A stretch of 64,000 nt of DNA from Scyliorhinus canicula. Its lineage: Eukaryota. Positions within the stretch are counted from its first letter, which is position 1, and every line of letters starts with the position of its first letter. The position numbers and the translations under genes are program-made. The DNA lies in NCBI RefSeq assembly GCF_902713615.1, contig NC_052162.1, positions 116,674,085 through 116,738,084 on the forward strand, given 5' to 3'. Positions 14,801-48,489 of this stretch are shown piece after piece. The notes beneath the pieces are model-generated. The model was given only the letters and a program-made list of their open reading frames with translations, was not told the DNA's origin and did no database searches.

Positions 14801-15945
14801 GGCCTTCAGACCTTCCACTATCTCTTCCAACCCGATCGGGTCTCCCAGTCCTTCTGCCAGCTCCCCATCCACCTTCGGTAAAGTCAGCCCCTCCAGGAAG
14901 TGCCTCATTCCCTCCGGCCCCGCAGAGGGTACTGACTTGTACAACCTGCTGTAAAAATCCCGAAACGTCTTACTAACCCCGACCGAGTCCCCAACTAAGT
15001 TCCCATCCCCGTCGATAAATTTCCCTATTTCTCTAGCTGCCTCCCTCTTTCTGAGCTGCTGTGCAAGCATCATACTGGCCTTCTCACAATGCTCCCCTCG
15101 CCTTTCTGAGCTGTTCCACTGCCCTCCCTGTGGGTAACAAGCCAAACTCCGCCTGTAGTCTCCGTCGTTCCCTTAAATGCCCTTTCTCTGGAGTCTCCAC
15201 GTACCTCCTGTCGACTTGTAGGATCTCTCTCACCAGTCGGTCTGTTTCTGCCCTGTCCATCCTGTCACTGTGAGCCAGGATCGAGATCAGTTCTCCTCTC
15301 ACCACTGCCTTCAGCGCTTCCCAGAGCACTGCTGCTGAGACCTCCCCCGTATCATTCACCTGCGGGTAATGCAGCATGCATTTCCTCAGCCTCTCGCACA
15401 CCGCTTCGTCCGCCAACAGCCCTACATCCAACCTCCATTGCGGGCGCTAATTGCTATCTTTACTCACCTGCAGGTCAACCCAGTGTGGAGCTTGGTCCGA
15501 GATTGTAATCGCCGAATACCCCGTGTCCACCACCCCTGCCAGCAAGGCCCTACCCAAAACAAAGAAATCGATCTGAGAGTATACCTTATGTATGTGGGAG
15601 TAGAAAGAAAACTCCTTCACCGTCGGCTTCCTAAATCTCCATGGATCCACCCCCCTCATCTGCTCCATGAACCCTTTCAGTTCCTTTGCCATTGCTGGTA
15701 CCCTGCCCGTTTTCAAGCATGATTGATCCAGGCCTTGATCAATAACTGTATTAAAGACCCCTCCCATGATCACTTTGTGCGAGTCCAGGTTCTATTTTCT
15801 CTTTATCAGTTTCGTGGTCCTCCATTGCTAAATTCTAAAACAAGTCCTCAGGCTCACTACTATTTTGGCCACTTTATGAGCCTCTTCCTTTGATCTAATA
15901 GAATCTTTTCTTGTTCGCCGCGGTTGCATCACTTCCTGTCTCAGA
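11830..15945 (-). mobile_element. CR1 fragment (11830-12215 and 15790-15945) split by the L1 insertion
   Basis: KVNKSPKADALHPRVLKE. The uninterrupted paralog is at 45755-46035. Confidence 0.75.
12217..15789 (-). mobile_element. L1-clade LINE, 5'-truncated, frameshifted, ~13-bp TSD
   Basis: ORF2 pieces homologous to 7916-11829. TSD is ttctattttgtct (12202-12214) / ttctattttctct (15790-15802). Confidence 0.9.
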
Positions 15946-16034
15946 TTCCCTGAGAGAGAAAGAGAAGAGAGAACGAAATGCAGTCCTGGATGTAATTGAA
16001 GCAGAAACAATAACAGCAGAATCCATCACTGTGA

Positions 16035-17129
16035 TCAACTGTGAACTTGTTGGTGTCTCAGCAGGGACAAGGAAACACAGAATCCTTTCCCACACTGGGA
16101 GCAGGTGAACGGCCTCTCCCCAGTGTGAACTCGCTGGTGTCTCCGCAGGTTGGATAAGTCCGCGAATCCCTTCTCACACTGAGAGCAGGTGAATGGCCTC
16201 TCCCCAGTGTGAACTCGCTGGTGTGTCAGCAGATTGGATAAGTCCATGAATCCCTTCTCACACTGAGAGCAGGTGAACGGCCTCTCCCCAGTGTGAATTT
16301 GCTGGTGTTTCTGCAGGTGGGATGACTGAATGAATCCCTTCCCACACTGAGAGCAGGTGAATGGTCTCTCCCCAGTGTGAATTCGCTGATGTCTCTGAAG
16401 TGTGCTTGAGTGAACGAATCCCTTCCCACACTGAGAGCAGGTGAACGGCCTCTCCCCAGTGTGAACTCGCTGATGTCTCCGCAGGTTGGATAAGTCCATG
16501 AATCCCTTCTCACACTGAGAGCAGATGAACGGCCTCTCCCCAGTGTGAACGTGCTGGTGTTTCTGCAGGTGGGATGACTGAGTGAATCCCTTCCCACACT
16601 GAGAGCAGGTGAATGGTCTCTCCCCAGTGTGAACTCGCTGGTGTGTCTGAAGTTTGCTTGACTGAGCGAATCCCTTCCCACACTGGGAGCATGTGAATGG
16701 CCACTCCCCAGTGTGAATTCGCTGGTGTGACTTCAGGTTTTCTAAACGAGTGAATCCCTTCCCACACTGAGAGCAGGTGAACGGCCTCTCGCCAGTGTGA
16801 ACTCGCTGGTGTCTCTGCAGGGTGGATAAGTCCGTGAATCCCTTCTCACAATGAGAGCAGGTGAACGGCCTCTCCCCAGTGTGAACTTGCTGGTGTGTCT
16901 GCAGGCTGTTTGACTGAGTGAATCCCTTCCCACACTGGGAGCAGGTGAATGGCCACTCCCCAGTGTGAATTCGCTGGTGTGACTTCAGGTTTTCTAAACG
17001 AATGAATCCCTTCCTACACTGAGAGCAGGTGAACGGCCTCTCCCCAGTGTGAATGCGTCGATGAATCTCCAGTTTAGACGGGACTCTGTATCCCTTCCCA
17101 CAGTCCCCACATTTCCACCGTTTCTCCAT
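16035..17129 (-). CDS. C2H2 ZNF copy 2, intact, 13 fingers, no effector domain
   Basis: [13 protein letters not shown]...LLRHQQVHS*. Acceptor at 17468/17467 and exon-1 donor at ~22141. Confidence 0.9.
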
Positions 17130-17952
17130 CTTTTGGGTCAACTCGTGTCTCTCCAGGTTAGACAATCAGTTGAAGCTTCGTCCACACACAGAACACATGT
17201 ACTGTCCCTACCCGCTGTGAATGGTGCGATGTGTTTTCAGGCTGTGTAACTGGTTAAAGCTCTTTCCACAGTCAGTGCTCTGGAACACTCTCACTCAGGT
17301 GTGTGTGTCTCGGTGCTTTTCCAGTCACACTGACGTTTAAACTTTGTTGAAGCCAACAGGTCGGGCAAACATTTCTCATAGATTTAATGGTCGATGAACC
17401 AAGTGACTCTATCAGATCTAGACGTGATGTTTGAGATTTCTGTCTGTAAATCCTATCCTTTCACATCCTGTAAAAGGAGTTTACAAAAGACATCACAGTC
17501 AGTATAGGATAGAAATTCAGAACAGACAATTCTAGTTTCTATGGAACATTCTTTCCTCTCTCATTCCCCAAAAGCTGTAAATCTCCATCCCACACACTCT
17601 CCCTCCATTCTCACTCTGCTGTATCTAATACTCACCCTCCCAATTCCCCTGAAGGTGCTGATTCAGGCTGATTGACAGATCCAAGCTCACTCCTGTCCTG
17701 GACACAGAGACCATAACAAATAGGAGCTGCAGTTGGCCATTCAGCCCATCAAGCCTACTCGACCATTCAATGAGATAATTGGCCAATCTACCTCAGCACC
17801 ATTTTTCCATACTATCCCCCATATCCCTCGATATCTTCAATATAGAGAAACCTATCAATCTCGGTGTAAAAATACTTGATGACTGAGGCTCCAGAGTCCT
17901 CTGGGGTAGGGAATTCCAAAGCTTCAGCACATTGTCTTTAAATTCATTGCCG

Positions 17953-18175
17953 GGGGCAGCACGGTGGCACAGTGGTTAGTACTGCTGCCCCTCAGTGCCG
18001 AGGACCTGGGTTTGATCCCGGCCCCGAGTAACTGTCCACGTGGAGTCTGCACATTCTCCCTGTGCCAGCGTGGGTCTCACCTCCACAATGTAAATCGATG
18101 TGCAGAGTCGGTGAATTGGCCACGCTAAATTGACTCTTAATTGAAAAAAAAGAATTGGTTACTCTAAATTTATTT
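17953..18175 (+). mobile_element. tRNA-derived shark SINE (HE1-like)
   Basis: gggcagcacggtggcacagtggttag A-box, gtttgatcc B-box, conserved gcacattctccc core. Confidence 0.85.
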
Positions 18176-18184
18176 TTTGTTGAA

Positions 18185-19360
18185 GGAAAATTAAGTTTCG
18201 GAGACAGAGGTGTAATTAAAGCATCGTAAAAAGCGTGGGCTAATGAAATGTTGTTTGGATGAAGGGGATTCCCTGTGGAGTTAATTAGATTTCAGCTTGG
18301 TAAGATGATGTCAGTACTGGGAGGAGCCAAGCTTGAATGATGAGGGCCTTGAGCCTTGAGGAAGGTGTTAAACAGCTTAAAGCTAGCACGCATGGCAGAG
18401 GAAGTTAAAAACAATGAGAATGGTTGAAATAGACGAAGATAGAAACAGCTTCACGGTTTTTTAGACTTTGAGCAGAATGCAACACGTGTTTTTTGAAATG
18501 TTTGGCAGTCTTGGGGATGATGCGAAGTCGCGGTTTTTAATGTAACACATCTATTTTGTTAAACATGAGACAATGCTTTGTAATTGACATGCACTGGAGA
18601 GAGGGTTTGAAATGTATAAAGTCTCAGAACGGCAGTTGCAAATAACACAGCAAGAAGTCTTACAACACCAGGTTAAAGTCCAACATGTTTGTTTCAAACA
18701 CGAGCTTTAGGAGCACTGTTCTCCTGAAGAAGGAGCTGTGCTCCGAAAACTAGTGTTTGAAACAAACCTGTTGGACTTTAACCTGGTGTTGTAAGACTTC
18801 TTACTGTGCTCACCCCAGTCCAACGCCGGCACCTCCACATCATGGCAAATAACACAGGTACAAGAGATAAAAGGGGAAGAGACAGGCCGAGCCATTCGGT
18901 TCAAATTTATTCTTCGATTCGATTCGAATCAGCTCATCGCTCCATGGGAATCGGAAGATGCCGGAAGACCGAAGAATGTGAACAACCACAAGCTATCAAG
19001 ATAGAAGCAAAATTGTTCAGAGAGCTCCTGAAGTCTGATCAACTAAAAGAGATTTTGTTAAAGCAAATAAAAATCAGTGTGATTTTAAATTTCAACCTGA
19101 AATAGTAGTTTATTTCAAATCTAAACCTGAAATAGTGGTTTACCCAGAAGACTCACCTATACATCCTCAGCAGATCCAGACCTTTAAAGGACATTGAGTG
19201 GTAAGTGAGTTAGAATTCTTCCTTGTAGATTTGGGATCCTATCACAACTTGAAATATAATTTGAAATAGATTAGTTCCCATCTGGTATCAGCAAGGGAGT
19301 CTAAAGGATAGAAGACCGTAGAGTGGCAACTAGTTAAGAAGTTATAGGATAGAGTAATTC
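18185..19360 (+). mobile_element. Unclassified insertion in ZNF copy 2 intron, possibly LTR-like
   Basis: Absent from paralogous introns; has TATAAA and AATAAA motifs; no ORF recognised. Confidence 0.25.
18651..18844. mobile_element. Short palindromic Penelope-derived element with 13-bp TSD and hammerhead-like core
   Basis: Hairpin arms agaagtcttacaacaccagg.../...cctggtgttgtaagacttct. TSD gcaaataacacag at 18638-18650 and 18845-18857. CTGAAGA a GGAGC tgt GCTCC GAAA at 18724-18748. Confidence 0.8.
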
Positions 19361-19814
19361 AGAAAGGATTAATATCTTTTTTTTTTAAAGAGTATAATTT
19401 TGATATTTTTATTTTCAGAAAGTTCTTAGCAATGCTGATTCATTTTCTAACTTTATTTTTTTTTAAATCCACAGAAAATAAGGCAATGGGTATTAATGAT
19501 ATTTTCAGCATGATCAACAGTACACAACTAGATATCAAGCATCAGTAGTTTTCAGATTTCAAATGTTCATGGTAAACAAAATGTCTCCCCAGTGGTTACC
19601 TGCAATTAGTGAAACTGATGAAGTATTTCACTTTCCAAACACTATCATACTTGGGTTAACACTTATCCAGATGTCATGACAAAATAAAGCTTACAGTTTA
19701 ACTCCTGACCTTTTTTACCTTCAACAAGCAGCTCAAACCAAATGTCTTAAAACGTGTGCAGACTCTAATTGTAAACAAATAACTGCTGTAGTATAGCAAA
19801 GGTTGGAACAGATC

Positions 19815-20255
19815 AGTTTCTTCTGGTCTGAGTTATAAGGAGAGGCTGGATGGGCTGGGACTTTTCCCCCTGGAGTGTAGGAGGCTTCGGTGTAATCTTA
19901 TAGAGGTCAACAAAATAATGAGCATAGATAAGGTCGATAGTCAACATCTTTTCCCTGAGGTAGAGGAGTCTAGAACTAGAGGGCATAGATTTGAGGTGAG
20001 AGAAGAGAGATGCAAAAGAGACCAGAGGGGACATTTCTTCATACAGAGGGTGGTGAACATCTGGAATGGCTGCCAGAGGCAGTGTAGAGGCAGGTACAAT
20101 TTTGTCCTTTAAAAGAGCAGTGGACATGGGCAGGGTGGGTATAGAGGGATATAGTCCAAATGCTGGAAAGTGGGACTAGCTTAGTAATAGAAACTGGGCG
20201 GCATGGACAAGCTGGGCCGAAGAGCCTGGTTCCAAGCTGTAAACATCTATAACTC
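19815..20255 (+). mobile_element. CR1 LINE 3' end
   Basis: SRTRGHRFEV...FFIQRVVNIWN followed by a typical 3' tail. Confidence 0.8.
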
Positions 20256-20504
20256 TACCTGGAACAAAATAAACCTCGCCTCAAGTTTGTTAAGCTCCAA
20301 TCACCAGGAGTTAAGGGAGGGTAAAGTCTCCCACAAATCAGGCTTCATCAATTGGCCTCTCGCCTTAGGTTCATAAGGGATTGGGTTAGGATGGAGCCAA
20401 CATTCATCTGGCTCAGTACAGAAGCAGATTAGTCAGTTCTCCCTCTATCCAAAACTGGCACAGGCTGATTATGGAATGCATCTCCATGCAATTTTTAAAG
20501 TGTG

Positions 20505-20820
20505 AGTCATAGAATTTACAGTGCAGAAGGAGACCATTCGGCCCATCGAGTCTGCACCGGCTCCTGGAAAGATAACCCCACTTAAGCCCACACCTCCACA
20601 CTATCCCCGTAAACTAGTAACCCCACCTAACCCGAGGGCAATTTAGCATGGCCAATCTATCTAACCTGCGCATCTTTCGACTGAGAGGGGAAACTGGAGC
20701 ACCTGGAGGAAACCCACGCAGACACAGTGAGAACGTGCAGACTCCACACAGACAGTGACCCAAGCTGGGAATCGAACCTGGGACCCTGAAGCTGTGAAGC
20801 ATCAGTCTGATGCATTGGGT
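20505..20820 (-). mobile_element. HE1-like SINE
   Basis: Reverse complement of the SINE head/core with a LINE-derived tail. Confidence 0.85.
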
Positions 20821-20934
20821 AGAGTATCGTACTCCTATCACAAATACATAGGCTCCAATTTGACTGACTTGCTCCTCCTGGGCTTCCTCCTGAGCTTTCC
20901 ATGAGTGAATTCAATTTAACTTAGGCCGGGAGTA

Positions 20935-21275
20935 GGGCACAGTGGTTAATGCTGCTACCTCAGCGCGAGGGACCCAGGTTCAATTCTAGCCTTGGGCAGC
21001 TGTCTGTGTGGAGTTTGCATATTCTCCTTGTGTCTTTGCGTGTTTCCTCCGGGTTCTCCAGTTTCCTCCCACTGTCCAAAGATGTGGAGTGAAAGTGGAT
21101 TGGTCACGCTAAATTGCCCCTTGGTGTCCAAGATGTGTAGGTTAGATGGGTTGACCATGATCAATGCACCGGGTTACGAGGATAGGATGGGGAGTGGGCC
21201 TCAGTGAAGTGCTATTTCTGAGGCTTAGTACAGACTTGAGGGGCGAATGGCCTTCTGCACTATAGGAGTTCTATG
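20935..21275 (+). mobile_element. HE1-like SINE
   Basis: ggcacagtggtta...ggttcaattc...gggtttcctccggg-like core. Confidence 0.85.
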
Positions 21276-22141
21276 TCATCTATGTTATGTTATTCATTTT
21301 AATTTGATTTTGCTGTTAGTCTGTTTGTAATATTTTTGGGTTTACAAACTGAATTGTTATCCTCGGTTTTTAGATAATCTCATCCTCTTTCCACACTCAC
21401 TATTTTAATCTGCTGACTGGTTGTTCAATTCATCTGGCATTTCATCTCAAGGCACTGGTTCCTCAAATATCCTGTTCCAAATTAATTCTGCTCCAAATTA
21501 ATTCTGCAATGTGTTGCATGTATTAATGTTGGCAATATCTCTTGTTCCGCTCTGGTGCCCATTTTCCACCATTCTTTCTGTTACTCTGTTGCATTCATTG
21601 TTTAGAACATGATTTAAAACATATCAATTTATTAAAAATCTGTCCAACTAATCCGTGAATATATTCAATGACCCCCACACCCCACTGGTCCCTGTGAAAG
21701 AAATCCAGAGCTAATAACCCTCTGAGGGAAGAAATGACTGGAAATATATAATAGAGCTACATAAGGCTAGGAATAATAATAAATGTACTTTATTATTGAA
21801 CCATAAATATCTCTAATCTGTACCATATAACAACACGAGACAGGTCTCTGTCCGATGTTAATTTACTGTCCCTTAAATGCCAGCCATCTCCTGGGGAAAG
21901 CAGCCCTTTAATTGTGAACATTGGGAAAGAGACCATCCTTTTAGCCAGACAAATAAACGTGTCAAGTTGAGGGAGCAAAATATGTCAATGTCTTTAAGAG
22001 AGAGAGACCTGGGCCAAGCTTTACAGAGTCTGCACCCTCCCTGGATTCACTTCCTTTCCCTTCAGTTGCTGCAAGTAACCAATTGAAGGTGAGAATGAGA
22101 AAAGAAATGGAAAGGGGGAGAAAAGAAAGTGTTTTACTCAC

Positions 22142-22665
22142 AGATGTTGGAGAGAGGAGGAAGTTTCAGTGTGTGTCAGGTCCCAGGTTTCCTCATTGTC
22201 CAGCTTCCGCAATCAGACAACGGAGAAGCTGATTGGATGGGGAAGGGAGTCCTTCCGGTTCACCAACTCTTCCCATTGGTCAAGAACATTCCTGCGCACG
22301 CCGAGGAATCTGCGGTGACATCTAAGGGTTCCAGTGCGCAGGCCCGGCACGCGGACACAGCAGCTCCGCCCACTCATTGTTCCCCCTCCTCCAGACAAGG
22401 TTTCCAGGCAACAGGCTGACAGCTCCGGCCAGAGCAAAAAGCCTCTCGGTGATTTCCCCTCCCCCCGGCCCGGGACTGCGCATGTCCTAGAGAGAGTAGA
22501 GGCGGCGCATGTGCGAGGGAAAGCCCAACCCCTGACCTGTCCTGCTGAGGTGTTGACCAATGGGAAGAGTTAGGACTGGAAGGACTCTGCTCCTCCAGCC
22601 AATCAGCGCGGGCTTTGAAGATTGAGCTTCACACAGACGGAAATCTCTTCCTGTCTCCAACATCT
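22142..22665. promoter_or_regulatory. Quasi-palindromic bidirectional promoter and two non-coding first exons (ZNF copies 2 and 3)
   Basis: Mirror-image donors ccaacatct|GTGAGT (22666+, ~22141-), paired CCAAT boxes on each side, GCGCATG NRF1-like sites (22477, 22505), RFX X-box 22400-22412, locally CpG-rich. Confidence 0.75.
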
Positions 22666-22827
22666 GTGAGTAAAACACTTTCTTTTCTCCCCTTTCCATT
22701 TCTTTTCTCATTCTCACCTTCAATTGGTTACTTGCAGCAACTGAAGGGAAAGGAAGTGAATCCAGGGAGGGTGCAGACTCTGGAAATCTTGGCCCAGATG
22801 TCTCTCTCTCTTTCTTAAAGACATTGA

Positions 22828-23010
22828 GAAGTCTTACAACACCAGGTTAAAGTCCAACAGGTTTGCTTCGAATCACTAGCTTTCAGAGCACAGCACCTTC
22901 CTCAGCGCCTTCCATTCACCTAGTGATTCGAAACAAACCTGTTGGACTTTAACCTGGTGTTGTAAGGCATCTTACTGTGCTCATCCCAGTCCCAGTTCTC
23001 CACATCATGG
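22828..23010. mobile_element. Short palindromic Penelope-derived element with 14-bp TSD
   Basis: TSD cttaaagacattga at 22814-22827 and 23011-23024. The empty site is seen in the paralog at ~48418. Confidence 0.82.
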
Positions 23011-23161
23011 CTTAAAGACATTGACATCCTTTGCTCCCTCAGCTTGACACGTTTATTTGTCTGGCTAAAAGGATGGTCTCTTTCCTAATGTTCACAATTA
23101 AAGGGCTGGTTTTCCCAGGAGATGGCTGACATTTAAGGGGACAGTCAATAAATATTAGGCA

Positions 23162-23385
23162 GTGGGTGGCATGGTTAATCATTGATGCTTCACAGCATCG
23201 AGAACCCGACTTCGATCCAGGCCCCGGGTCGCTGTCCGTGTTGAGTTTGCACATTCTCCCTGTGTCTGCGTGGATCTCACCCGCCACAACCCAAAGATGT
23301 GAAGGGTAGGTGAATTGGCCACATCAAATTGCCTTTTGATTGGAACAAAAGAATTGGGTATTCTAAATTTACTTTTAAAAATAAA
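23162..23385 (+). mobile_element. HE1-like SINE in ZNF copy 3 intron
   Basis: SINE head/core; flanking aggcag is duplicated. Confidence 0.8.
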
Positions 23386-24524
23386 AATTTAAAATCAGGC
23401 AGAGATATGTCTAGTGTTTCTATATGGTACATATTTAATACAGTATTTATGGTTCTGCAAATAAGTACATTTATTAGAATTTCTAGTTGTGTAATAATGC
23501 AGTTACATTATATATTTCCAGTCTTCTCTTCTGTCAGATGATTATTAGTCTCTGGATTTCTCTTCGACAGGGACCAGTGGGGTCTGAGAGTCATTGAATA
23601 TATTCAAGGATGAGTTAGCTAGATTTTTAATTGACAAGGGAGTCAAGGTTTATGGGCAACAAGTAGGAAAATCAAGAGAAAGCTGAGATGAGGAGGAATT
23701 TCTTCACTGGAGGATGGGGTGAAGCTTTGGAATTCTCTACCCCAGAGGACTGGAACCTCAGTCATCAAGTATTATCAGACTGAGATTGACAGGTTTCTCG
23801 ATATTGAACATACCGATGGGGGATAGTGTGGGAAAATGGTGCTGAGGTAGATTGGCCAATTAGCTCATTTAATGGTTGAGCAGGTTCTATGGGCTGAATG
23901 GCTGAATGCAGCTCCTATTCATTATGATCTGTGTTCTGACAGGAAGCGATGATCATGGGTCTGTCAATCAGCCTGAATCAGCACCTTCAGGAGATTTGGG
24001 AGGGTGAATATTAGATACAGCAGAGTGAGAATGGAGGGAGAGTGTGTGGGATGGAGATTTACAGTATTTGGGGAATGAGAGAGGAAAGAATGTTCCAGAG
24101 AAACTAGAATTGTCTGTTCTGAATTTCTATCCTGTACTGACAGTGATTTTTTTGTAAATTGTTTTTCCAGGATATTAGAAGAGGAGGAATCACAGATAAA
24201 AATTGCAAGGGTCAAATCTCGATCTGACAGTCACTCGATTCTTTGGGACCTGAATATCATCGGCCTTTGAATCTGGAAGGAGAAATGTTTCCCGTTCTGT
24301 AGGCGTCGAAATATTTTAAACATCAGTGTGACTGGAAAAGTACCGAGACACACACACCCGAGTGAGAGTGTTCCAGAGCACTGACTGTGGAAAGAGCCTT
24401 AACCAGTTACACAGTCTGAAAGAATATCACGGCATTCACAGGGGGGAGAGACCATACATGTGGGTTCTGTGAAGTCAAGGCTTCAGCTGATTGCCTGACC
24501 CGGAGAGACACAAAGATTCGAAAT

Positions 24525-25283
24525 ATGGACAGACTGTGGAAATGTGAGGACTGTGGGAAGGGATACGGAGCCCCATCTGCACTAGAGGCTCATCGGCGCA
24601 TTCACACTGGGGAGAGGCCATTCAGCTGCTCTCAGTGTGGGAAGTCATTCACTCAGTTATCCCACCTGCGGACACACCAGCGATTTCACACTGGGGAGAG
24701 GCCATTCACATGCTCCCAGTGTGGGAAGGGATTCAGTGATTCCTCCACCCTGCACAGACATCAGGCAGTTCACACTGGCAGGAAGCCGTTCACCTGCGCT
24801 CAGTGTGGGAAGGGATTCACTCAGCTATTCCCGCTGCAGACACACCAGCGAGTTCACACTGGGGAGAAGCCGTTCTCCTGCTCTCAGTGTGGGAAGGGAT
24901 TCAGATATTCATCCAACCTGCAGGCACACCAGAGAGTTCACACTGGGGAGAGGCCATTCAACTGCTCTCAGTGTGGGAAGGGATTTACTCAGTTGTCCAA
25001 CCTGGAGACACACCTGAGAGTTCACACTGGGGAGAAGCCATTCACCTGTTCTCAGTGTGGGAAGGGATTCAGTGTTTTATCCAGCCTTCAGAGGCATCAA
25101 CGGGTTCATACTGGGGAGAAGCCGTTCACCTGCTCTCAGTGTGGGAAGGGATTCATTCAGCAATCCAACCTGCAGAGACACCAGCAAATTCACACTGGGG
25201 AGAGGCTGTTCACCTGTTCTCGATGTGGGAAGGGATTTTGTGTTTCAACACATCTGCTGAGACATCAACAAGTTCACAATTGA
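24525..25283 (+). CDS. C2H2 ZNF copy 3, intact, 9 fingers, no effector domain
   Basis: MDRLWKCEDCGKG...LLRHQQVHN*. Acceptor ttccAG|GATATT at 24170/24171. Confidence 0.9.
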   Translation: MDRLWKCEDCGKGYGAPSALEAHRRIHTGERPFSCSQCGKSFTQLSHLRTHQRFHTGERPFTCSQCGKGFSDSSTLHRHQAVHTGRKPFTCAQCGKGFTQLFPLQTHQRVHTGEKPFSCSQCGKGFRYSSNLQAHQRVHTGERPFNCSQCGKGFTQLSNLETHLRVHTGEKPFTCSQCGKGFSVLSSLQRHQRVHTGEKPFTCSQCGKGFIQQSNLQRHQQIHTGERLFTCSRCGKGFCVSTHLLRHQQVHN

Positions 25284-25736
25284 TGACGGGTTGGATTCTG
25301 CTGTTCTTGTTTCTCCTCTCAATTACCTCGAGGACTGCATTTTGTTCATTCTGGCAGTTGGTCAGTGGGGGTGGTTGGAAGGTTTCTTTCTACTGGACAC
25401 TCCGGTTTTACATCTTTGCCTCCAGTGGGTTGATGATATTCAAAACTTGTTGTGAATACCAGGCTTTAAATTGCACAATAAAAGGATCACAGAGTGAAAG
25501 GGCTTTTGGAAGTTCAAAAATATATAATTCCCATTTCTGTTTGGAATCCCCTAAATCATGCCATGTTGCCATGAAGATGGACTGTGGTGGTTATGTGTCT
25601 CTTTTGTTTAATGTATCTCGGTGCTTCTCACAGAAGAAAACTATCAGGGTATGAGGGGCAAGTTGTCTGAGGTGGACAGGGAAACTGTTGGGAGGTAGGG
25701 AATAGCTAATAGTTAAGGAATTATTACATATTACAA

Positions 25737-25950
25737 GGGCCAGTTAGCTCAGTTAGCTGGATGGCTGGTTTGTGATGCGGAGCGACTCTAACAACATGGA
25801 TTCAACTCCCATATCGGTGGAGGTTATCCATGAACCTTGCCCCTCATCTGAGGTGTGGTGACCCTCAGGTTAAATCACCACCAGTCAGCTCTCTCTCTCT
25901 CTCAAAGGGGAGAGCAGCCTATGGTCCTCTGGGCCATTGGTGACATTCAT
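25737..25950 (+). mobile_element. tRNA-derived SINE, second family (also ~52975-53165, 46085-46300(-), 41630-41760)
   Basis: gttagctcagtt(a/g)gctgg A-box, g(a/g)ttcaa B-box, shared aggtgtggtgaccctcaggttaaatcaccac body. Confidence 0.7.
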
Positions 25951-26130
25951 TTATTTTTTAAAATAAATTTCGAGCACCCAATTTGTTTTTTCCAATTAAG
26001 GGGCAATTTGGCGTGGCCAATTGACCTCCTCTGCATATCTTTTTGGGTTGTGGGAGTGAGACCCAGGCAGACACTGGGAGAATGTTCAACGGTGACTTTC
26101 ATTTCACATGAATGCAACAAATCTCAATTC

Positions 26131-27735
26131 TTTTTTTAAAAAATAATATTTTATTGAGGTTTTTGAAATTTTTTATTACAGCAACAACAGTAACATTAAC
26201 AATGACATCAACATGGTAAAATAAACATCCCCCCCCCCCCCCCCCAGTCATACAACACCCTTGGAATATTGCATCTGCTGACAGTTTAATTTTCCCCGAG
26301 AAAGTCGACAAACGGCTGCCACCTCCGGGTGAACCCTAACATTGACCCTCTTAAGGCAAACTTTATTTTCTCAAGACTGAGAAACCCAGCCATGTCACTA
26401 ACCCAGGTCTCTACACTCAGGGGCTTTGAGTCCGTCCACATTAACAAGATCCGTCTCGGGGCTACCAGGGAGGTAAAGGCCAAGACGTCGGCCTCTTTCA
26501 CTCCCTGAACTCCCGTAACTTCCGACACTCCAAAGATCGCTTCCTCTGGACTCGGCACCACCTGTGTTTTTAGCACCGTGGACGTTGCCTTCACAAAATC
26601 CTGCCAAAACCCTCTAAGCTTCGGGCATGCCCAAAACATGTGGATATCATTTGCTGGGCTTCCTGCCCACCTCGCACACCTATCCTCAACCCCGAAGAAT
26701 TTACTCATCCCAGCCGCTGTCATGTGTGCCCAGTGGACTACCTTAAATTGTATCAGGCTAAGCCTGGCGCACGATGAGGTATTAACCCTGCTTAGGCCAT
26801 CCGCCCATAGCCCCGCCTCTATCTGTCCTCGTAGCTTGTCCTCCCACTTGCCCTTAAGCTCCTCCACCTGAGTTTCCTCCGCCTCCAAAAGCTCCAGGGC
26901 TGGTTTAGCTCACCAGGCTAAATCGCTGGCTTGTAAAGCAGACCAGCAGCACGGTTCGATTCCCGTACCAGCCTCCCTGGACATGCGCCGGAATGTGGCG
27001 ACTAGGGGCTTTTCACAGTAACTTCTTGAAGCCTACTCATGATAATAAGTGATTTTCATTTCATTTCATTCATATCCGATAACTTCCCCTCTCCCACCCA
27101 GGGACTGGAAACTATCCTATATCCCCCGTGGCAGCAGCAGCGGAAAAACCGGCACCTGTTTCCTCAGGAAGTCTCGCACCTGCAAATACCTAAAACCATT
27201 CCTGGTTGGCAATTTAAATTTGTCCTCCAAAGTTTCAATCTGGGGAAGCTTCCGTCTATAAATAGATCCCCCATTCTTCTAATTCCTACCCTCTGCCAAC
27301 TCCGGACGACCTGCCATCTAGCCTACCCGGTACAAACCTGTGGTTATTACAAATTGGGTCCAAATCAATGCTCCCTCCCCTCTCATATCTCCTCCATTGC
27401 TCCCAGATCCTCAGAGCCGCCAATACCACCGGACTTGTGGAGTATCGGGCCGGCGAGAACGTCAGAGATGCTGTTACCAATGCTCCCAGACTGGTGTCTT
27501 TGCATGTCGCTGCTCCATCCACTCCCATGCTGATCCCCCAATACCCACTTCCTAATCATGGCTATTAGTCGCCCAGTAGTAATTGCAGAAGTTCGGCAGC
27601 GCCAATCACCCTCCTCCCGACTGTGCTCCAGCAACACTTTCCTCACTCGCGGGGTTTACTCGCCAAAAACAAAGCCCAAAATAATCTTATTCACCTGCTT
27701 GAAAAAGGCCTTTGGGATGTAGGTGGGGAGGTTGT
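26131..27735 (-). mobile_element. L1-clade LINE 3' fragment containing a SINE (26896-27071)
   Basis: RLSLIQFKVVH...HMFWACP...RWQPFVDF and poly(A) at ~26131. The SINE has a (tttca)n tail. Confidence 0.85.
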
Positions 27736-29359: not shown

Positions 29360-32300
29360 TTTCTTTATACAAAATCTTTATATTGGCATTTTCAATATTG
29401 TACACGTTGCCGTTCGTTTTCATTTATTGCACAGTCACAAAGGTTTCTTCTTGGGTTTCTCTATTTACAGACCGTCGCCGTCTGGCTCAACGTACAATCC
29501 TCCCTACTCACCCCACCTGCTGCCCGCCCAACCAACCCCCAGCTCCCCTCTCCCTGACCCCCCCCTCCCCACAGCACCCCTCTCTCTGACCTGCCGCTCC
29601 CTCGCAGCTCCTCTCCCCCTGACCTCCCCCTCCCTCCCAGCTCCCCTCTCCCTGACCCCTCCCAGCTCCTCTCTCCCTGACCCCTCTCCCTCGCAGCTCC
29701 TCTCCCCCTGACCTCCCCCTTCCTCCCACCTCCCCTCTCCTCGACCCCCCTCCCCTCAGCTCCCCTCTCCCTGACCCCCCTCCCCTCAGCACCCCTCTCC
29801 CTGACCCCCTCCCTCAGCTCCCCTCTCCGAGACCGCCCTCCCCCGGCTCCTCTCTCCCTGACCCGTTCCCCTCAGCTCCCCTCTCCCTGACCCCCCTCCC
29901 CTCAGCTCCCCTCTCTGAGACCCCCCTCACCCAGCTCCTCTCTCCCTGACCCCCCCTCATCCCAGCCCTCCTCTCCCTGACCCCCCTCCCTCCCAGCTCC
30001 CCTCTCCCTGACCCCCTCTCCCTCCCAGCTCCCCTCTCCCTGACCTCCCTCCCAGCTCCCCTCTCCCTGACCCCCCCTCCCAGCTCCCTCTCCCTGACCC
30101 CCCTCCCTCCCAGCACTCCTCTCCGACCCCCCTCCCTCCCAGCTCCCCTCTCCCTGACCCCCCCTCCCTCCCAGCTCTCCTCTCCCTGACCCCCTCCCTC
30201 CCAGCTCCCCTCTCCCTGACCCCCCCCCCTCCCTCCCAGCTCCCCTCTCCCTGACCCCCCTCCATCCCAGCTCCCCTCTCCCTGACCCCCCTCCCCCAGC
30301 TCCCCTCTCCGACCCCCCTCCCTCCCAGCTCCCCTCTCCTTGACCCCCCCTCCCTCCCAGCTCCCCTCTCCCTGACCCCCCCTCCCTCCCAGCTCCCCTC
30401 TCCCTGACCCCCCCTCCCTCCCAGCTCCCCTCTCCCTGACCCCCCCTCCCTCCCAGCTCGCCTCTCCCTGACCCCCCTCCCTCCCAGCTCCCCTCTCCCT
30501 GACCCCCCTCCCTCCCAGCTCCCTCTCCCTGACCCCCTCCCTCCCAGCTCCCCTCTCCCTGACCCCCCTCCCTCCCAGCTCTCCTCTCCCTGACCCCCTC
30601 CCTCCCAGCTCCCCTCTCACTGACCCCCCTCCCTCCTAGCTCCCTTCTCCCTGAGCCCCTTCCCTCCCAGCTCCTCTCTCCCTGACCCCCCTCCCTCCAG
30701 CTCCCCTCTCCCTGACCCCCCTCCCTCCCAGCTCCCCTCTCCCTGACCCCCCTGCCTCCCAGCTCCCCTCTCCCTGACCCCCCCTCCCTCCCAGCTCCCC
30801 TCTCCCTGACCCCCCCCCTCCCAGCTCCCCTCTCCCTGACCCCCTTCCTTCCCAGCTCCCCTCTCCCTGAACTCCCTCCCTCCCAGCTCCCCCTCCCTGA
30901 CCCCCCTCCTCCTCTACCCAGCTCCCCTCTCCCTGCCCCCCTCCCTCCCAGCTCCCCTCTCCCTGACCCCGCTCCTCTCCCCAGCTCCCCTCTCCCTGCC
31001 CCCCCTCCCTCCCAGCTCTCCTCTCCCTGACCCCCCCTCCCTCCCAGCTCCCCTCTCCCTCACCCCCCTCCCTCCCAGCTCCCCTCTCCCCTCACCCTCA
31101 CCCCCCTAGCTAGCTGTGTAACTCCCCCCATTGTACTCCCGTGAGTCAGCTGACACCTGCTGACCCCAGCCTGTCCTGCCACACCATTGACCCCCCCCCC
31201 CAGTGAAACACTGCCCCTCCCCTCCCCGCCCACAAGCTGGCTCACCTTCCCTTTCCGGTCCCAGTGCGGGAAAAAGCCCGCGCTTCCAACTCCAGCCCCG
31301 CCCCCTCCCCTTCAACCCTTAGTGCGGGAAAAAGCCGGCGCTTTCCACTCACCCGGCCCCGCCTCCTCTAGCGCAGCTCCCCTTTCAGGCCCAGTCTCAC
31401 TATCCCCATCCCTGGCCACCCCCCACCCCCCGTGAGGCTCCATCAACCCCTGCCGACCATCAACCCCCCCAGCTATTTGCCTAACCCCCTTCACGAGCCC
31501 ATCTGGCGGGCCTGAACAATGCCCCATCAACCGCCCAAAGAACAACAAAAAAGAACCACCCTCAGAACATAACCCAGCAATCCCCAACCATCCCCCAACC
31601 CTCAGTCAGAGTCCAGTTTTTCGGCCTGAACAAAAGCCCAGGCCTCCTTTGGGGACTCAAAATAATGATGTTGGTCCTTGTGGGTGACGCACAGATGCGC
31701 CGGCTGTAGCCAAACTTCACCCCTCTCCTGTACAGCACCGCCTTCGCCCGGTTGTACCCGGCCGTCTTCTTCACCACCTCCGCACTCCAATCCTGGTAGA
31801 TCCGGACCTCTGCATTCTCTCACCTGCTGCTCCGCTCCTTCTTGGCCCACCTTAGCACACACTCTCGATCAGGAAACCGGTGGAACCGCACCAGCATCGC
31901 CCATGGGCCCCCTCCTGCTCCAAGGGCCCCTGGAAGGCCCCCGCTCCCATCAGCGAATTCAACAGGGTGACCACGTAGGCCCCCATGTCCGATCCCTCCA
32001 GCCCCTCCGGGAGGCCCAGGATCCGCAGATTCTTCCACCTCGACCAGTTCTCCATTTCCTCGAACCTCGCCTGCCATTTCTTGTGGAGCGCCTCGTGCGC
32101 TTCCACCTTCACCGCCAGGCTTAGGATCTCATCCTCGTTCTCCGAGGCCTTTTGCCGGACCTCCCGGATCGCCGCCCCTTGGGCCGTTTGGGTCTCCAGG
32201 AGCTTGTCGAATGAGGCCTTCAGCGGTTCCAGCAGCTCTGCCTTGAGCTCCCTAAAGCAGTGCTGGAGCAGCTCCTGCTGCTCCTGCGGCCATTGCATTC

Positions 32301-33562: not shown

Positions 33563-33836
33563 CTTGTTCTTTGCTTCCTGACTTGATTCTCTAAATTGGG
33601 GAATTGTGGTCCCTGTGACATCACACTGTCGGGTATGATGCTATTGTGACAGAGTTCCGTGTTGTCATGGTACCCACCATGTTTGTTTACATCATCCCAC
33701 ATCACCCGTTTCCATAGTTACCCAGTTTAACTCGCTGTTGACAGAATCTTTCCCATTGATTTGGTGTTCTACCTGCCAATTGCTCAGACAGAAAACGATT
33801 GCTAAGAGTGAACATTATATCCAGGCACTCAGAACA

Positions 33837-34572
33837 ATGATCGTGACTACGTGGATTATATATTGTTGGGCAAATGGTAAAATTCATGGAGCAGTTCATT
33901 CTGTTTCTGTCGCAAAGATTGATGAAGTGACTACTGGAGAAATTGAAGAAATTATCTCCGGTGGAGATCAGGAACAATGTGTCAACGGTCAAAATACCTC
34001 AGCTGCTGTTGTGTTTGCAGAGGAGATCGAAGTTGGAACCGAACAGCCAGAAGAGGAGCTGAACCTCCAGGCCCTCGTGACAGAGATCAAAGGTCAGCTG
34101 TTGTGGAGGAGGCTGATCCTGGTACCGAGCGGCCAGAATGACCAGCAGGATCTGGGAGTTTCCCTGGAGATCAGCCAAGGTGTGAGAGACAAGCGGCTCA
34201 CCTGAACCAATGGTTGAATCTCTGACTCCAGCTGTTAATCTTGATGACATTGAACTGCAGGAAGATAGCGTCAATGGCAGTAGTGATGTGGAAGATAGAT
34301 CTGCCGGTGAGGTCTCCTCTGTTGCCATCGATCATCATCCAGAGGACCAAGCCTCACCGCTCAGCAACACTGAGGGAGCCACTGTGGACAATACCCCAGC
34401 TGGAGCCGTTGCAAATTTCATAGATGATGAAGAAATGGACAGTATCGATCTGGAATCCTCGTCGGACACTGGGAGCTTCAGGTCCACCGGATTTTTATTT
34501 GTGCAATTCCCGAGCAGCAGTGAGAATGACTCACTGCTGAACAACATTGAGGGAGCCGTAATGGACAATACC
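33837..34572 (+). pseudogene. Unidentified acidic, coding-like exon (frameshifted; longer copy ~38172-39270)
   Basis: Long stop-poor D/E/S-rich reading in both copies; no family recognised. Confidence 0.4.
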
Positions 34573-35300
34573 TGTGTTACTGACTGTATCTATACTGATG
34601 TTAAATGTTATTCCAGCTTCCTCACACTGTCACTCAGTAACCCCACCCCCCAGCACCCTGTGTTACTGAGTGTATCTCTGCTCATATTAATGGAGCTCCC
34701 TCACACCATCACTGAGTAACCCCACCCCCCAGCACCCTGTGTTACTGACTGTATCTATACTGATATTAATGGAGCTCCCTCACACCGTCACTGAGTAACC
34801 CCACCCCCCAGCACCCTGTGTTACTGAGTGTATCTATACTGATATTAATGGAGCTCCCTCACACCGTCACTCAGTAACCCCACCCCCCAGCACCCTGTGT
34901 TACTGAGTGTATCTATACTGATATTAATGGAGCTCCCTCACACCGTCACTGAGTAACCCCACCCCCCAGCACCCTGTGTTACTGAGTGTATCTGTGCTGA
35001 TATTAATGGAGCTCGCTCACACCATCACTGAGTAACCCCACCCCCCAGCACCCTGTGTTACTGAGTGTATCTATACTGATATTAATGGAGCACCCTCACA
35101 CCGTCACTGAGTAACCCCACCCCCCAGCACCCTGTGTTACTGAGTGTATCTGTGCTGATATTAATGGAGCTCGCTCACACCATCACTGAGTAACCCCACC
35201 CCCCAGCACCCTGTGTTACTGAGTGTATCTGTACTGATATTAATGGAGCTCCCTCACACTGTCACTCAGTAACCCCTCTCCTACAGTGTCCTGTGTTACT
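34572..35300 (+). repeat. 79-bp minisatellite, ~9 copies
   Basis: attaatggagc recurs at 34686, 34765, 34844 and onward. Confidence 0.95.
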
Positions 35301-36837: not shown

Positions 36838-39414
36838 ACGTGCGACTTAGCTCTACATAGCCACAACCGGAAGTCCCCTATTCATTCCCTCTACAATCGA
36901 CATACAGTGGGAGCAGTGTATACCATAAACAAGATGCACTGCAGCAACTCGGCCAGGTTCCTTCAACAGCACCTTCCAACCCCCAACCTCTGCCACTTGG
37001 AAGGAAAAGGGCAGTAAATACATGGGGGCACCACTGCCTGCAAGTTCCCCTCCAAGCCACACACCAGCCTGACTTGGAACTATATCGCAAGACATCCCTC
37101 ATCACAATGCAGAGAACCTTATTGTTTGATGTTGCATTCAAGCTGTTTTTCACATCCAACAAACTCTTTCTTCCTCAGCAACCATATGCTGCTTTGTCCA
37201 TTACCTCTTGTGGGAGGGTTTTTAAAGTCCCAAAATAGGGAACCCTCCTTGATCATCTTTTTACAAAAACACCTCTAATTCATCATCAGACAATGAAGGT
37301 GCTCTGCATTGTGATGAGGCATGTCTAGTTCTATGCTCACCAAGAGTTAGGAAATCCCCTTAAATACTCACTGCAGTCTTTAAAAGCTGTAACAGTCAAT
37401 TATTTCCTTTCCCAGCGATCTCGACTAACAGTATGCTGGACATAATTAACATTGGAAGGGATTGGAAGGCCAATGGTTGGCTGCCTCTGCCACCGCAAAA
37501 CACTCGAGGGGGGAGCAGAAAATCCCACCCACTGTGTCCATAGCTGGAAAATATAGATAGACACTGACCACTCGGTCCCGAGTTACTGACCATGATCCGA
37601 TCATGGCCTCTGCCACCTCCGCCCAGGCCCGGTTGACATCTGTGGGTGACAACCTCCTACCCACCTCGGGGAACAGCGTGCCCCACCTCTCCTCCATGGC
37701 ATCCAGTAAAAGCTCGAGCTCTGTATCTGTGAATCTCGGGGCCTGCTTTGGAATTGCACTAGTGCCACGTGGTGTGAGTGCTGCCACATTAGCATGTCCT
37801 AAATGGCTCCGGCAGTCACACCCCCATCAGGACCGGGGAACACCTCCCATTCAGTCCTGGTGTCTACACTTAGCCTCTCAAACAGAGAATTCTGCCCCTT
37901 GTTCTTTGCTTCCTGACTTGATTCTCTAAATTGGGGAATTGTGGTCCCTGTGACATCACACTGTCGGGTATGATGCTATTGTGACAGAGTTCCGTGTTGT
38001 CATGGTACCCACCATGGTAGTTTATGTCATCCCGCATCACCCGTTTCCATAGTAACTCAGTTTAACTCGCTGTTGACAGAACCTTTACCATTGATTTGGT
38101 GTTCTACCTGCCAATTGCTCAGACAGTAAACGATTGCTCAGAGTGAACATTATATCCAGGCACTCAGAACAATGATCGTGACTACGTGGATTATATATTG
38201 TTGGGCAAATGGTAAAATTCACGGAGCAGTTCGTTCTGTTTCTGTCGCAAAGATTGATGAAGTGACTACTGTAGAAATTGAAGAAATTATCCCCGGTGGA
38301 GATCAGGCACAATGTGCCAACGGTCAAAATACCTCAGCTGCTGTTGTGTTTGCAGAGGAGATCGAAGTTGGAACCGAGCAGCCAGAAGAGGAGCTGAACC
38401 TCCAGGCCCTCGTGTCAGAGATCAAAGTTCAGCTATTGTGGAGGAGGCTGATCCTGGTACCGAGTGGCCAGAATGACCAGCTGGGATCTGGGAGTTTCCC
38501 TGGAGATCAGCCAAGGTGTGAGACACTGTCAGATGATCGAGTGGACAAGCAGCTCACCTGAACCAATGGTTGAATCTCTTACTCCAGCTGTTAATCTTGA
38601 TGACATTGAATGCCACATTGAACTGCAGGAAAATAGCGTCAATGGCAGTAGTGATGTGGAAGATAGATCTGCCGGTGAGGTCTCCTCTGTTGCCATCGAT
38701 CATCATCCAGAGGACCAAGCCTCACTGCTCAGCAACACTGAGGGAGCCACTGTGGACAATACCCCAGCTGGAGCCGTTGCAAATTTCATAGATGATGACG
38801 AAATGGACAGTATCGATCGAGAATCCTCGTCAGACACTGGGAGCTTCAGGTCCACCGGATTTTTATTCGTGCAATTCCCAAGCAGCAGTGAGAATGACTC
38901 ACTGCTGAGCAACATTGAGGGAGCCGTAATGGACAATACCACAGCGAGAGGAATGGACGATAACATCGACCTGGAATTGCTGTTGGACTCAGAGACCTAC
39001 AATTTCGCCGGACATTTACGCTGCAGTTGCCAAGTGTCACTGAGAGGGAGCAGTGTACTCGGAGACCATCACTGACACATTCTGCTGAGAGAATGCAGTC
39101 TTGGTTGGCTGACAAATCAGCTCAAGCGAACAAAGGACTGGAAAAAAGTCAAGTCGCTTCAGACGCCAGGAACATCGTTGAACGCTCGGCTGTTTCGCGT
39201 CAGACGTTGGAAGTCAGAAGTTGAAGAGAAGAACTGCCGTCGTCTGGGAAGAGGACCAAAGAATTAAACTCATCAGAAGCCCAGACTGGAACGGGGAAAA
39301 GCCCAACAGGGAAGTGAATTTTAACTTTTAATATTATTGTTTTATTGTATTTGTAGAGAACATATTGAAATATTGAACATTGAGAATAGTAATAGGTCGT
39401 GTTGTTTTGGATTT

Positions 39415-41894: not shown

Positions 41895-42550
41895 GAGGGG
41901 CTGGAGGATGTTACAGAGATAGAGAGTGTTGTAGGGGCTGGAGGATGTTACAGAGATAGAGAGTGTTGTAGGGGCTGGAGGATGTTACAGAGATAGAGAG
42001 TGTTGTAGGGGCTGGAGGATGTTACAGAGATAGAGAGTGTTGTAGGGGGCTGGAGGATGTTACAGAGATAGAGAGTGTTGTAGGGGCTGGAGGATGCCAC
42101 AGAGATAGAGAGTGCTGTAGGGGCTGGAGGATGTCACAGAGATAGAGAGTGTTGTAGGGGCTGGAGGAGTCTACAGAGATAGAGAGTGTTGTAGGGGCTG
42201 GAGGATGTTACAGAGATAGAGAGAGTTGTAGGGATGGGAGGAAGCTACAGAGATAGAGAGTGTTGTAGGGGCTGGAGGATGTTACAGAGATAGAGAGTGT
42301 TGTAGGGGCTGGAGGATGTTACAGAGATAGAGAGTGTTGTAGGGGCTGGAGGATGTTACAGAGATAGAGAGTGTTGTAGGGGCTGGAGGATGTTACAGAA
42401 ATAGAGAGTGTTGTAGGGGCTGGAGGATGTTACAGAGATAGAGAGTGTTGTGGGGGCTGGAGGATGTTACAGAGATAGAGAGTGTTGTAGGGGCTGGAGG
42501 ATGTGACAGAGATAGAGAGTGTTGTAGGGGCTGGAGGATGTTATAGAGAC
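41895..42550 (+). repeat. 37-bp minisatellite (~17 copies) within a degenerate halo 41430-43190
   Basis: Unit agagatagagagtgttgtaggggctggaggatgttac. Confidence 0.95.
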
Positions 42551-46035: not shown

Positions 46036-46299
46036 GGGTTTTTACTCCTTAAAGGAATCTATGTTTGTTGTATTTGTGTGAAATAAAAGTCGCCAAAGTC
46101 CCAGAGGACCAGAGTCTGCTTTGCCCTCTGAGAGAGAATGAGAGCTGACTGGTGGTGATTGAATCCGACGGTCACCACAACTCAAGCAAGGGGCAATGCT
46201 GAGAAGGTGAGGCCTTCATGGATAAGCTCAGCCGGTACGGGTGTTGAATCCCCTGATGTTGGAGTCGCTTTGCATCACAAACCAGCCAACTGAGCTAAC

Positions 46300-48268: not shown

Positions 48269-48489
48269 GTGAGTAAAACACTTTCTTTTCTCCCCTTTTC
48301 CATTTCTTTTCTCATTCTCACCTTCAATTGGTCACTTGCAGCAACTGAAGGGAAAGGAAGTGAATCCAGGGAGGGTGCAGACTCTGGAAAGCTTGGCCCA
48401 GGTCTCTCTCTCTCTCTCTTCAAGACATTGACATCCTTTGCTCCCTCAGCTTGACATATTTATTTGTCTGGTTAAAAGGATGGTACCTT

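Follow-up and report, generated by a model that had tools for sequence, protein, structure and literature searches.

Background

Fast-evolving zinc-finger (ZNF) gene families are believed to keep transposons in check by means of a dedicated repressor domain, KRAB in tetrapods and FiNZ in carp-like fish. The tetrapod KRAB zinc-finger proteins (KZFPs) are encoded in clusters that are mostly head-to-tail arrays. Cartilaginous fishes have no KRAB families (PMC8455134). Cyprinid ZNFs carry FiNZ, a conserved stretch of 28 aa at the N terminus that long went unnoticed (PMC10547256), and human ZNF146/OZF and ZNF507 consist of fingers without another domain and bind LINE-1 (PMC8896011). For the catshark, chromosomes 13 and 17 have been mentioned, without further analysis, as carrying clusters of recently duplicated zinc-finger genes (PMC11979771), and that remark is all that we found in the literature on the family described here, whose architecture we found nowhere described. 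We analysed this family in a stretch of 64,000 nt of Scyliorhinus canicula DNA (the window; no N; all coordinates are window positions), which carries seven copies of a gene unit that would encode C2H2 fingers and nothing else.

The catshark genes resemble the tetrapod KZFP clusters in many respects: they are poly-C2H2 genes that lie in clusters, were amplified within a lineage and have one large exon for the fingers, they undergo birth and death in transposon-rich surroundings, and diversifying selection is indicated at helix positions -1, 2, 3 and 6. Unlike the KZFP genes they have no KRAB exon or other N-terminal domain, and their orientation alternates. With the cyprinid FiNZ-ZNFs they have in common an independent, KRAB-less and lineage-specific poly-ZNF expansion in fish, with positive selection on the arrays (PMC10547256), but whereas FiNZ provides an N-terminal sequence of 28 aa, the catshark family, which is elasmobranch, has only 4 residues before finger 1. 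ZNF146/OZF and ZNF507 are alike in having C2H2 fingers alone and no recognisable effector, and the LINE-1 binding of ZNF146 is a precedent for transposon binding without KRAB; they are unlike the catshark genes in being single conserved genes rather than an amplified, fast-evolving cluster, and orthology between them is not likely. To speak of a new system goes too far: we see here an unusual form of a familiar, fast-evolving poly-ZNF kind, and what is unusual is its architecture of alternating divergent pairs, a preserved leader of dead fingers and very strongly conserved intron ends. Our overall reading, which we consider probable, is that the window is part of a large catshark cluster of an elasmobranch-wide, fingers-only poly-C2H2 family that evolves by birth and death and whose pairs go back to inverted duplication.

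Seven copies of one gene unit

The window is transposon-rich vertebrate DNA in which seven copies of one gene unit were recovered: G0 (+), A1 (-)/A2 (+), B1 (-)/B2 (+) and C1 (-)/C2 (+). Orientation alternates strictly (7/7 copies; chance probability ~0.016), the spacing being ~0.4-1 kb head to head and 8-21 kb, filled with transposons, tail to tail. A six-frame scan placed the C2H2 arrays at 607-1431 (+), 2780-3100 (+), 16041-17117 (-), 24537-25277 (+), 46394-46462 (-), 51278-52520 (+) and 60393-61469 (-); C2 (from 63612, +) is truncated by the window end. The shared anatomy was checked by BLAST of pair A pieces against the window, by multiple alignment and by exact motif counts. The copies are homologous from the 3' block of an intron, through its acceptor and to the end of the leader that follows: G0 42-594, A1 17689-17130 (-), A2 23940-24524, B1 47376-~46900 (-), B2 50854-51265, C1 62072-61482 (-) and C2 63612-64000.

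The initial annotation of this DNA had described three divergent pairs that share the intron 3' block, an AG|GATAT acceptor and the untranslated region (UTR). These blocks are indeed homologous, in seven copies, and the acceptor in that form fits five of them (A1 reads GATGT and B1 GATAC). Three intact pairs are not present: only pair A is intact. Its coding sequences lie at 16035-17129 (-; A1, 364 aa, MEKRW and then 13 C2H2 fingers) and at 24525-25283 (+; A2, 252 aa, MDRLW and then 9 fingers). The 3' UTR and flank of A2 (25284-25911, +), with an AATAAA 194 nt past the stop, are common to B2 (52533-53164) and in part to G0.

Fingers-only proteins and the selection on them

The predicted proteins start with MEK(P/R)W or MDRLW, 4 residues before finger 1, continue through 9-14 tandem C2H2 fingers and stop 1 residue after the last His. 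They were recognised by Pfam as zf-C2H2 and zf-H2C2_2 (E 1e-42 to 1e-111), and with at least five fingers and the TGEKP-like linker consensus HTGERPF they belong to the Krueppel-type tandem poly-C2H2 class. The Pfam scan returned only zinc-finger families: KRAB (PF01352) matched in 0/4 proteins and SCAN (PF02023) in none of the scanned window proteins, and a FiNZ-like 28-aa N-terminal sequence is absent, there being only MEK(P/R)W ahead of finger 1 and closed frames upstream. The proteins thus appear to consist of fingers alone, without an accessory domain, as the initial annotation had it in stating that they are fingers only from the first Met and lack a dedicated effector; such a constitution is not unprecedented, as ZNF146/OZF illustrates (PMC8896011).

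Selection was analysed on 41 internal fingers of A1, A2, B2 and C1. The framework Cys, His, Phe and Leu are invariant, and entropy peaks at helix positions -1, +3 and +6. The dN/dS was 1.73 at helix positions -1, 2, 3 and 6 (those to which the initial annotation had pointed), 0.79 at helix positions 1, 4 and 5, and 0.27 for framework plus linker. This indicates purifying selection on the framework and, as in transposon-targeting ZNF families, diversifying selection on the DNA-contact positions. Such a pattern is typical of DNA-binding arrays that are changing their specificity, and the products would therefore be sequence-specific DNA binders with a quickly changing specificity.

The first and last fingers (the latter ending in …LLRHQQVH-stop) keep position-specific, family-specific frameworks in every copy while the helices between them vary, which agrees with what had been noticed at first. 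The further suggestion that the family acts through these conserved terminal fingers is not supported: their framework dN/dS of 0.16-0.30 indicates no more constraint than the internal 0.27, the contact residues of the first finger vary, and there is no sign that the terminal fingers stand in for an effector.

Anatomy of the gene unit

As predicted from the aligned copies, the unit comprises a TATA-less CCAAT-ETS-CCAAT promoter, a short non-coding exon 1, an intron and a single large exon. Four promoters align, with two CCAAT boxes that lie ~43 nt apart on either side of an ETS-like CCGGAAG and have CCGGAAGGACTC between them; GCGCATG motifs lie farther upstream, two in A2 and B2 and one exact copy upstream of C1. 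In pair A, exon 1 (3' end 22141) and the core promoter of A1 occupy 22141-22283 (-), where the CCAAT boxes are inverted (22232 and 22275) and the ETS-like CCGGAAG lies at 22258-22247; those of A2 occupy 22553-22665 (+), where the two CCAAT boxes are at 22557 and 22599 and the non-coding exon 1 ends at 22665. The pair centres are mildly CpG-enriched (observed/expected 0.53-0.64; whole window 0.40).

Exon 1 is short and without a usable ATG. The 19-mer CAACATCT|GTGAGTAAAAC at its donor is identical in exactly four copies (A1 22149-22131, A2 22658-22676, B2 48261-48279 and C1 63206-63188), the number also given initially; elsewhere exon 1 falls in a rearranged region (C2), has been lost (B1) or lies outside the window (G0). 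The intron, of 1.4-4.7 kb in the four copies with both ends in the window, spans 17468-22140 (-) in A1, with a conserved 3' block (17468-17689), transposon insertions (~17950-21630) and an ultra-conserved 5' element (~22020-22140). In A2 it spans 22666-24170 (+), with the 5' element at 22666-22786, the 3' block at 23940-24170 (core 23980-24059), a hairpin miniature inverted-repeat transposable element (MITE) at ~22820-23010 and a short interspersed nuclear element at ~23165-23376. This MITE-like element, which has long internal inverted arms, occurs three times (18646-18807, 22821-23011 and 7331-7417), and the copy at 22821-23011 in the A2 intron interrupts an arm of the pair A palindrome described below.

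The acceptor TTTT[ACG][CG]AG|GAT[AG][TC] was found exactly 7 times in the 64 kb, once per copy, and ~230 nt of intron before it and ~350 nt of exon after it are homologous across copies; in B1 the intron is cut 104 nt above the acceptor, with no exon 1 beyond. The leader after the acceptor (~350 nt) consists of what were once three N-terminal fingers, now interrupted by stops and frameshifts, several of the stops being at the same positions in different copies. It runs at 17130-17467 (-) in A1, with three dead fingers, stops and several upstream ATGs, and at 24171-24524 (+) in A2, with dead fingers, three closed frames and two short upstream open reading frames (ORFs). All three frames are closed after the acceptor; upstream of the ATG the first in-frame stop comes after as few as 2 codons (C1) and at most 31 (A2), and therefore no upstream coding exon could be joined in frame through this acceptor. 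The working ATG sits in a former finger linker (…T/Q-x-MEKPW…) in a strong Kozak context, with A at -3 and G at +4 in 5/5 complete copies.

Relatives in other elasmobranchs

A whole-protein search and an exhaustive one with the first 60 residues returned so many generic poly-ZNF proteins that they were uninformative on N-terminal domains, and a search limited to residues 1-44 gave no candidates. A search scored on residues 1-60 of C1 returned elasmobranch proteins with the same first finger, which was found only in elasmobranchs. RefSeq models that start with MEKPW/MEKAW and continue with WKCGDCGK were found in Mustelus asterias, Pristiophorus japonicus and Heterodontus francisci (two, XP_067869942.1 and XP_067870053.1), and the same first finger is internal in long or chimeric models of Carcharodon, Heptranchias, the skate Rhinoraja and the stingray Hemitrygon. 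None of the elasmobranch matches carries KRAB or SCAN. The family would accordingly be a Krueppel-type poly-C2H2, fingers-only family of elasmobranch-wide distribution, and the designation as a chondrichthyan ZNF system holds at least for elasmobranchs, as judged from the common first finger in sharks, skate and stingray.

The relatives also inform on the history of the leader. Three Heterodontus proteins start one finger earlier, with the catshark dead finger 3 intact, and show what the leader used to be. In Heptranchias perlo (locus L001) the leader is 81-84% identical to catshark leaders and the 3' half of the intron block 90.5%; the three dead fingers are in one frame, the dead finger 2 segment (15560-15650) still reads as an intact finger, and two stops (…SV-stop and …GFN-stop) are shared with catshark, so that fingers 1 and 3 would have died before sevengill and catshark diverged. 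The fingers-only form thus appears ancient, having been kept since before the deepest shark lineages split. The Heptranchias copy has no partner within reach and is uninformative on pairing.

Two of the public models deserve a separate remark. In Heptranchias an endogenous retrovirus-like element with gag, protease, reverse transcriptase, integrase and env-like ORFs (L001 1597-10795) lies directly upstream of the ZNF unit, and the public model makes one protein of its env-like end and the finger array. In Pristiophorus japonicus the public model (P0275) joins histone-fold domains to a member of the family, which fits the remark in the catshark paper that one chromosome carries both histone and ZNF clusters.

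The relatives bear as well on the idea that an effector is hidden, either as a short N-terminal peptide or domain reached through an alternative exon or acceptor, or as a translated dead-finger region. In the Rhinoraja model ~110 residues outside any working finger, some of them from decayed fingers, are read in frame ahead of the first finger; FiNZ, with only 28 aa, was itself long overlooked (PMC10547256); and the ultra-conserved intron elements are unexplained. These points are countered by the catshark frames, which all close after the acceptor (in C1 by an in-frame stop only 2 codons above the ATG), by the intron elements, across neither of which a frame is open in all copies, and by the Mustelus, Pristiophorus and Heterodontus models, which start at MEKPW/MEKAW. 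We hold a hidden effector to be the least probable of the explanations considered, and prefer to regard the proteins as fingers alone.

Head-to-head pairs and the mode of duplication

Pair A is an inverted duplication around its promoter region, as was first noted: a palindrome of 9.4 kb (15971-25347) around a unique, mildly CpG-enriched centre of 270 nt (22284-22552) that holds two GCGCATG motifs (22478, 22505). The arms are 92-97% identical in exon 1 and the proximal intron, 92-94% in the intron 3' block and ~82% in leader and arrays, and the longer left (A1) intron is due to transposon insertions. As in other palindromes that are homogenised arm to arm, identity is highest next to the centre. 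Except where transposons have inserted, the introns of A1, A2, C1 and B2 are homologous from end to end, which makes one complete gene the basic unit and the pair an inverted duplication of that gene.

The exon-1 3' ends are at 22141 and 22665 in pair A (524 nt apart) and at ~63199 and ~63560 in pair C, and the inferred start sites of the divergent genes would be less than 1 kb apart. Pair A resembles bidirectional promoters of the NF-Y/ETS type in its divergent genes, its CCAAT and ETS-like motifs and its mild CpG enrichment, but differs in being two complete inverted copies of one unidirectional core instead of a single shared core. Each gene appears to have a core promoter of its own, and 'two inverted core promoters ~0.3 kb apart' would describe the arrangement better than 'shared bidirectional promoter'.

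Two trees were made, the first from the intron block and leader and the second from the same regions with the first finger, last finger and 3' UTR added. The split {A1,B1,C1}|{A2,B2,G0,C2} was recovered in both, with support 68/76 and 69/83, and a sub-lineage of G0 and C2 was well supported (97/92-93). Furthermore, a distal 3' flank is common to A1 and B1 and absent in A2 and B2, while the latter two have a 630-nt 3' UTR in common. Duplication at the level of pairs, as the initial annotation had proposed, is likely on these patterns, though unproven: the alternating orientation and the strand-specific 3' flanks are in its favour, and the limited tree support and the differing centres are not.

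Several observations weigh against duplication of whole pairs and leave room for incidental pairing, in which the single gene is the unit of duplication, independent inverted duplications occur occasionally, and genes with their own promoters are under no selected co-regulation. All copies represent one complete single-gene unit with its own CCAAT-ETS-CCAAT core. The strand split has a bootstrap of only 68-69, and A1 and A2 as sisters were not rejected (approximately unbiased test, p-AU 0.18). The three pair centres are built differently: the spacer of pair A is homologous to the region upstream of the C1 promoter, yet it is attached to the plus gene in A and to the minus gene in C, and the B centre consists of 3.8 tandem copies of a CCAAT/GC-box unit derived from the CCAAT segment of the proximal promoter (a 57-nt unit at 47650-47868, with a CCAAT box and a GC box, GGGCGGG, per copy). 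The long Heterodontus and Carcharodon models string together same-strand units, which suggests that same-strand neighbours exist. Partner copies also share local features (the 5' ends of A1/A2, the first finger of B1/B2) that blur the history, as expected from exchange between palindrome arms. What incidental pairing leaves unaccounted for is the 7/7 alternation (p ~0.016), the 3' flank of A1/B1 that is absent from A2/B2 together with the 630-nt 3' UTR of the latter, and the placement of all minus copies on one side in both trees. We rate incidental pairing as unlikely, if a serious contender, and retain inverted duplication followed by duplication of pairs as the preferred reading.

Conserved intron ends

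Conservation among A1, A2, B2 and C1 is strikingly uneven along the non-coding part of the unit. Mean pairwise identity is 54-80% in the promoter (column windows upstream of exon 1), 72% in the exon-1 region just before the 5' element, and 97-99% in the last bases of exon 1 and the first ~120 nt of the intron. This 5' element, including the exon-1 end, lies at 22655-22786 in A2, 22020-22151 (-) in A1, 48258-48391 in B2 and 63066-63209 (-) in C1. At the other end, the core of the intron 3' block (23980-24059 in A2) is 94-99% identical among five copies including G0 and C2. Within the leader the dead finger 2 (24330-24417 in A2, with counterparts in A1, B2, C1 and G0; C2 is cut before it) is 90-97% identical, against 63-76% for the rest of the leader in the same copies. 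The conservation of the intron ends (~120 nt at each end, 94-99% among paralogs) is a new observation.

Synonymous divergence is 0.14-0.17 in the first finger and ~0.28-0.35 in internal fingers, by which measure the intron-end elements are estimated to be several-fold (5-10 times) less diverged than synonymous sites. The differences between copies are scattered singletons and not patches, which argues against gene conversion.

As to their nature, a hidden coding exon in the conserved intron parts was ruled out, since every frame is interrupted in at least one copy and the copies differ by 1-nt indels. An origin as transposon terminal inverted repeats was ruled out too, there being no Watson-Crick inverted repeat above shuffles. 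Rfam gave no match in pair A (15000-26500), and on neither strand does the intron 3' block fold more stably than shuffles. The 5' element is CU-rich and contains an inverted CCAAT and a AGGAAGTG motif, and the 3' block is GA-rich; pairing of the two as RNA was calculated at -83 kcal/mol, a value reached by 1/100 and 5/100 dinucleotide shuffles, so that RNA-level pairing of the intron ends is suggestive only.

One may speculate, and we do so with considerable reservation, that the non-coding skeleton of dead-finger leader, conserved upstream ATG and two ~120-nt intron-end elements is a common control module that holds many ZNF genes without an effector under a single regime. Possible mechanisms would be translational gating by upstream ORFs, the docking of factors with long footprints, for example the family's own proteins (autoregulation), and a CU-rich/GA-rich pairing that bridges the transposon-collecting intron.

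Damaged copies and the question of decay

A1 and A2 are the only intact copies, the other five of the seven being damaged or cut. G0 (42-1449, +), of the sub-lineage that we call class 2, has its intron 3' block at 42-272, acceptor at 272|273, dead-finger leader at 273-594 and ATG at 595; one finger has a Cys-to-Phe change, and a premature stop (1339-1341) strands the last finger (1363-1449). B1 (46081-47376, -) is a degraded pseudogene with many frameshifts, truncated at both ends: its truncated array is joined to distal 3' UTR, its intron block is cut at 47376 and it has no exon 1. B2 (48075-52526, +) has its promoter at 48075-48206, exon 1 end at 48268, intron at 48269-50914 with the 5' element at 48269-48391, leader at 50915-51265 and ATG at 51266; its 14-finger array is broken by the loss of 2 bp in a short TG run near 51880, which could be real or an assembly error.

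In C1 (60246-63321, -) the last finger and 3' UTR have been replaced by an inserted Gypsy element, which also supplies the tail of its 411-aa ORF (13 fingers, then Gypsy-derived sequence below ~60390); the leader is at 61482-61841, the intron at 61842-63198 (3' block 61842-62072, 5' element 63066-63198), the exon 1 3' end at 63199 and the promoter at 63244-63321. C2 (63500-64000, +), class 2 and sister to G0, has a rearranged exon-1 remnant (~63520-63560), a shortened intron, its 3' block at 63612-63843 and its leader from 63844. The family evolves by birth and death.

Two side observations concern these copies. An isolated three-finger fragment (2730-3102), without leader or intron block, lies 3' of G0 and is nearest to the G0 fingers (672-1266, 77-80%). 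The C1 ORF passes from its array into the Gypsy-type element (60246-60400 and 58300-60312), which is read antisense and makes the 411-aa ORF chimeric.

The 364-aa product of A1 and the 411-aa product of C1 match exactly to called genes in GCA_902713615.2, given there as bare ORF ranges; these calls are no evidence of expression, because even the Gypsy-chimeric C1 ORF is called. An exact look-up in the protein collection gave no match for six submitted window sequences, which is informative for all except G0 and B2, whose entries began 3 codons inside the ORF.

The number of damaged or incomplete copies (5/7) speaks against the overall reading proposed above. So do the 1-6 upstream ATGs in the leaders, which would damp translation; the models of several relatives, which are chimeric or run several genes together; and the fact that sequence and the models of other species are the basis for the splice junctions, start sites and expression given here. 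One could then see in the cluster a graveyard of mostly decaying pseudogenes, similar to each other through recent duplication and slow mutation. B1, B2, C1 and G0 are damaged, the leaders are full of upstream ATGs and stops, and the Heptranchias copy, behind its retroviral insertion, reads TEK instead of MEK and is without a start Met. Shark mutation rates are slow, and at such rates a cross-species leader identity of 75-83% could be near neutral. Decay alone does not account for the dN/dS of 0.27 in the framework against 1.73 at the contacts, which is the signature of working fingers, nor for the intact ORFs of A1 (13 fingers) and A2 (9 fingers) with a conserved start context, nor for intron-end elements that are 5-10 times less diverged than synonymous sites. 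A graveyard is in our judgement very unlikely, and a family that turns over by birth and death while some members are kept working remains our reading.

Other features of the window

Three further features lie outside the gene units. A C-rich 31-nt tandem repeat (29538-31107, ~50 copies, GC 0.68) creates an ORF of 268 aa on the minus strand that is spurious. Two copies of one pair of acidic Ser/Asp-rich ORFs lie ~4.4 kb apart (33738-34719 and 38172-39075), and satellites of 79-nt units (34615-35276) and 37-nt units (41896-42563) are found near them.

Implications

The course of events that we propose is the following. Inverted duplication of a complete gene including its promoter would have produced head-to-head pairs, the palindrome arms of pair A having been homogenised near the centre, and segmental duplication then probably spread the pairs and gave the alternating orientation. 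The two back-to-back promoters, with ~0.5 kb between them, are likely active together, and translation would proceed from the linker-derived ATG through 9-14 fingers to the stop right after the last. The proteins probably bind transposon-derived DNA, and may act by occupancy or via partners that bind the fingers, as has been proposed for human ZNF146.

The elasmobranch family bears the same evolutionary signature as the transposon-policing families of tetrapods and carp-like fish, without the repressor domain. If its proteins silence transposons, sharks would provide a natural test of finger arrays that work without an effector, and the conserved intron ends and the dead-finger leader are testable candidates for control of the family as a whole.

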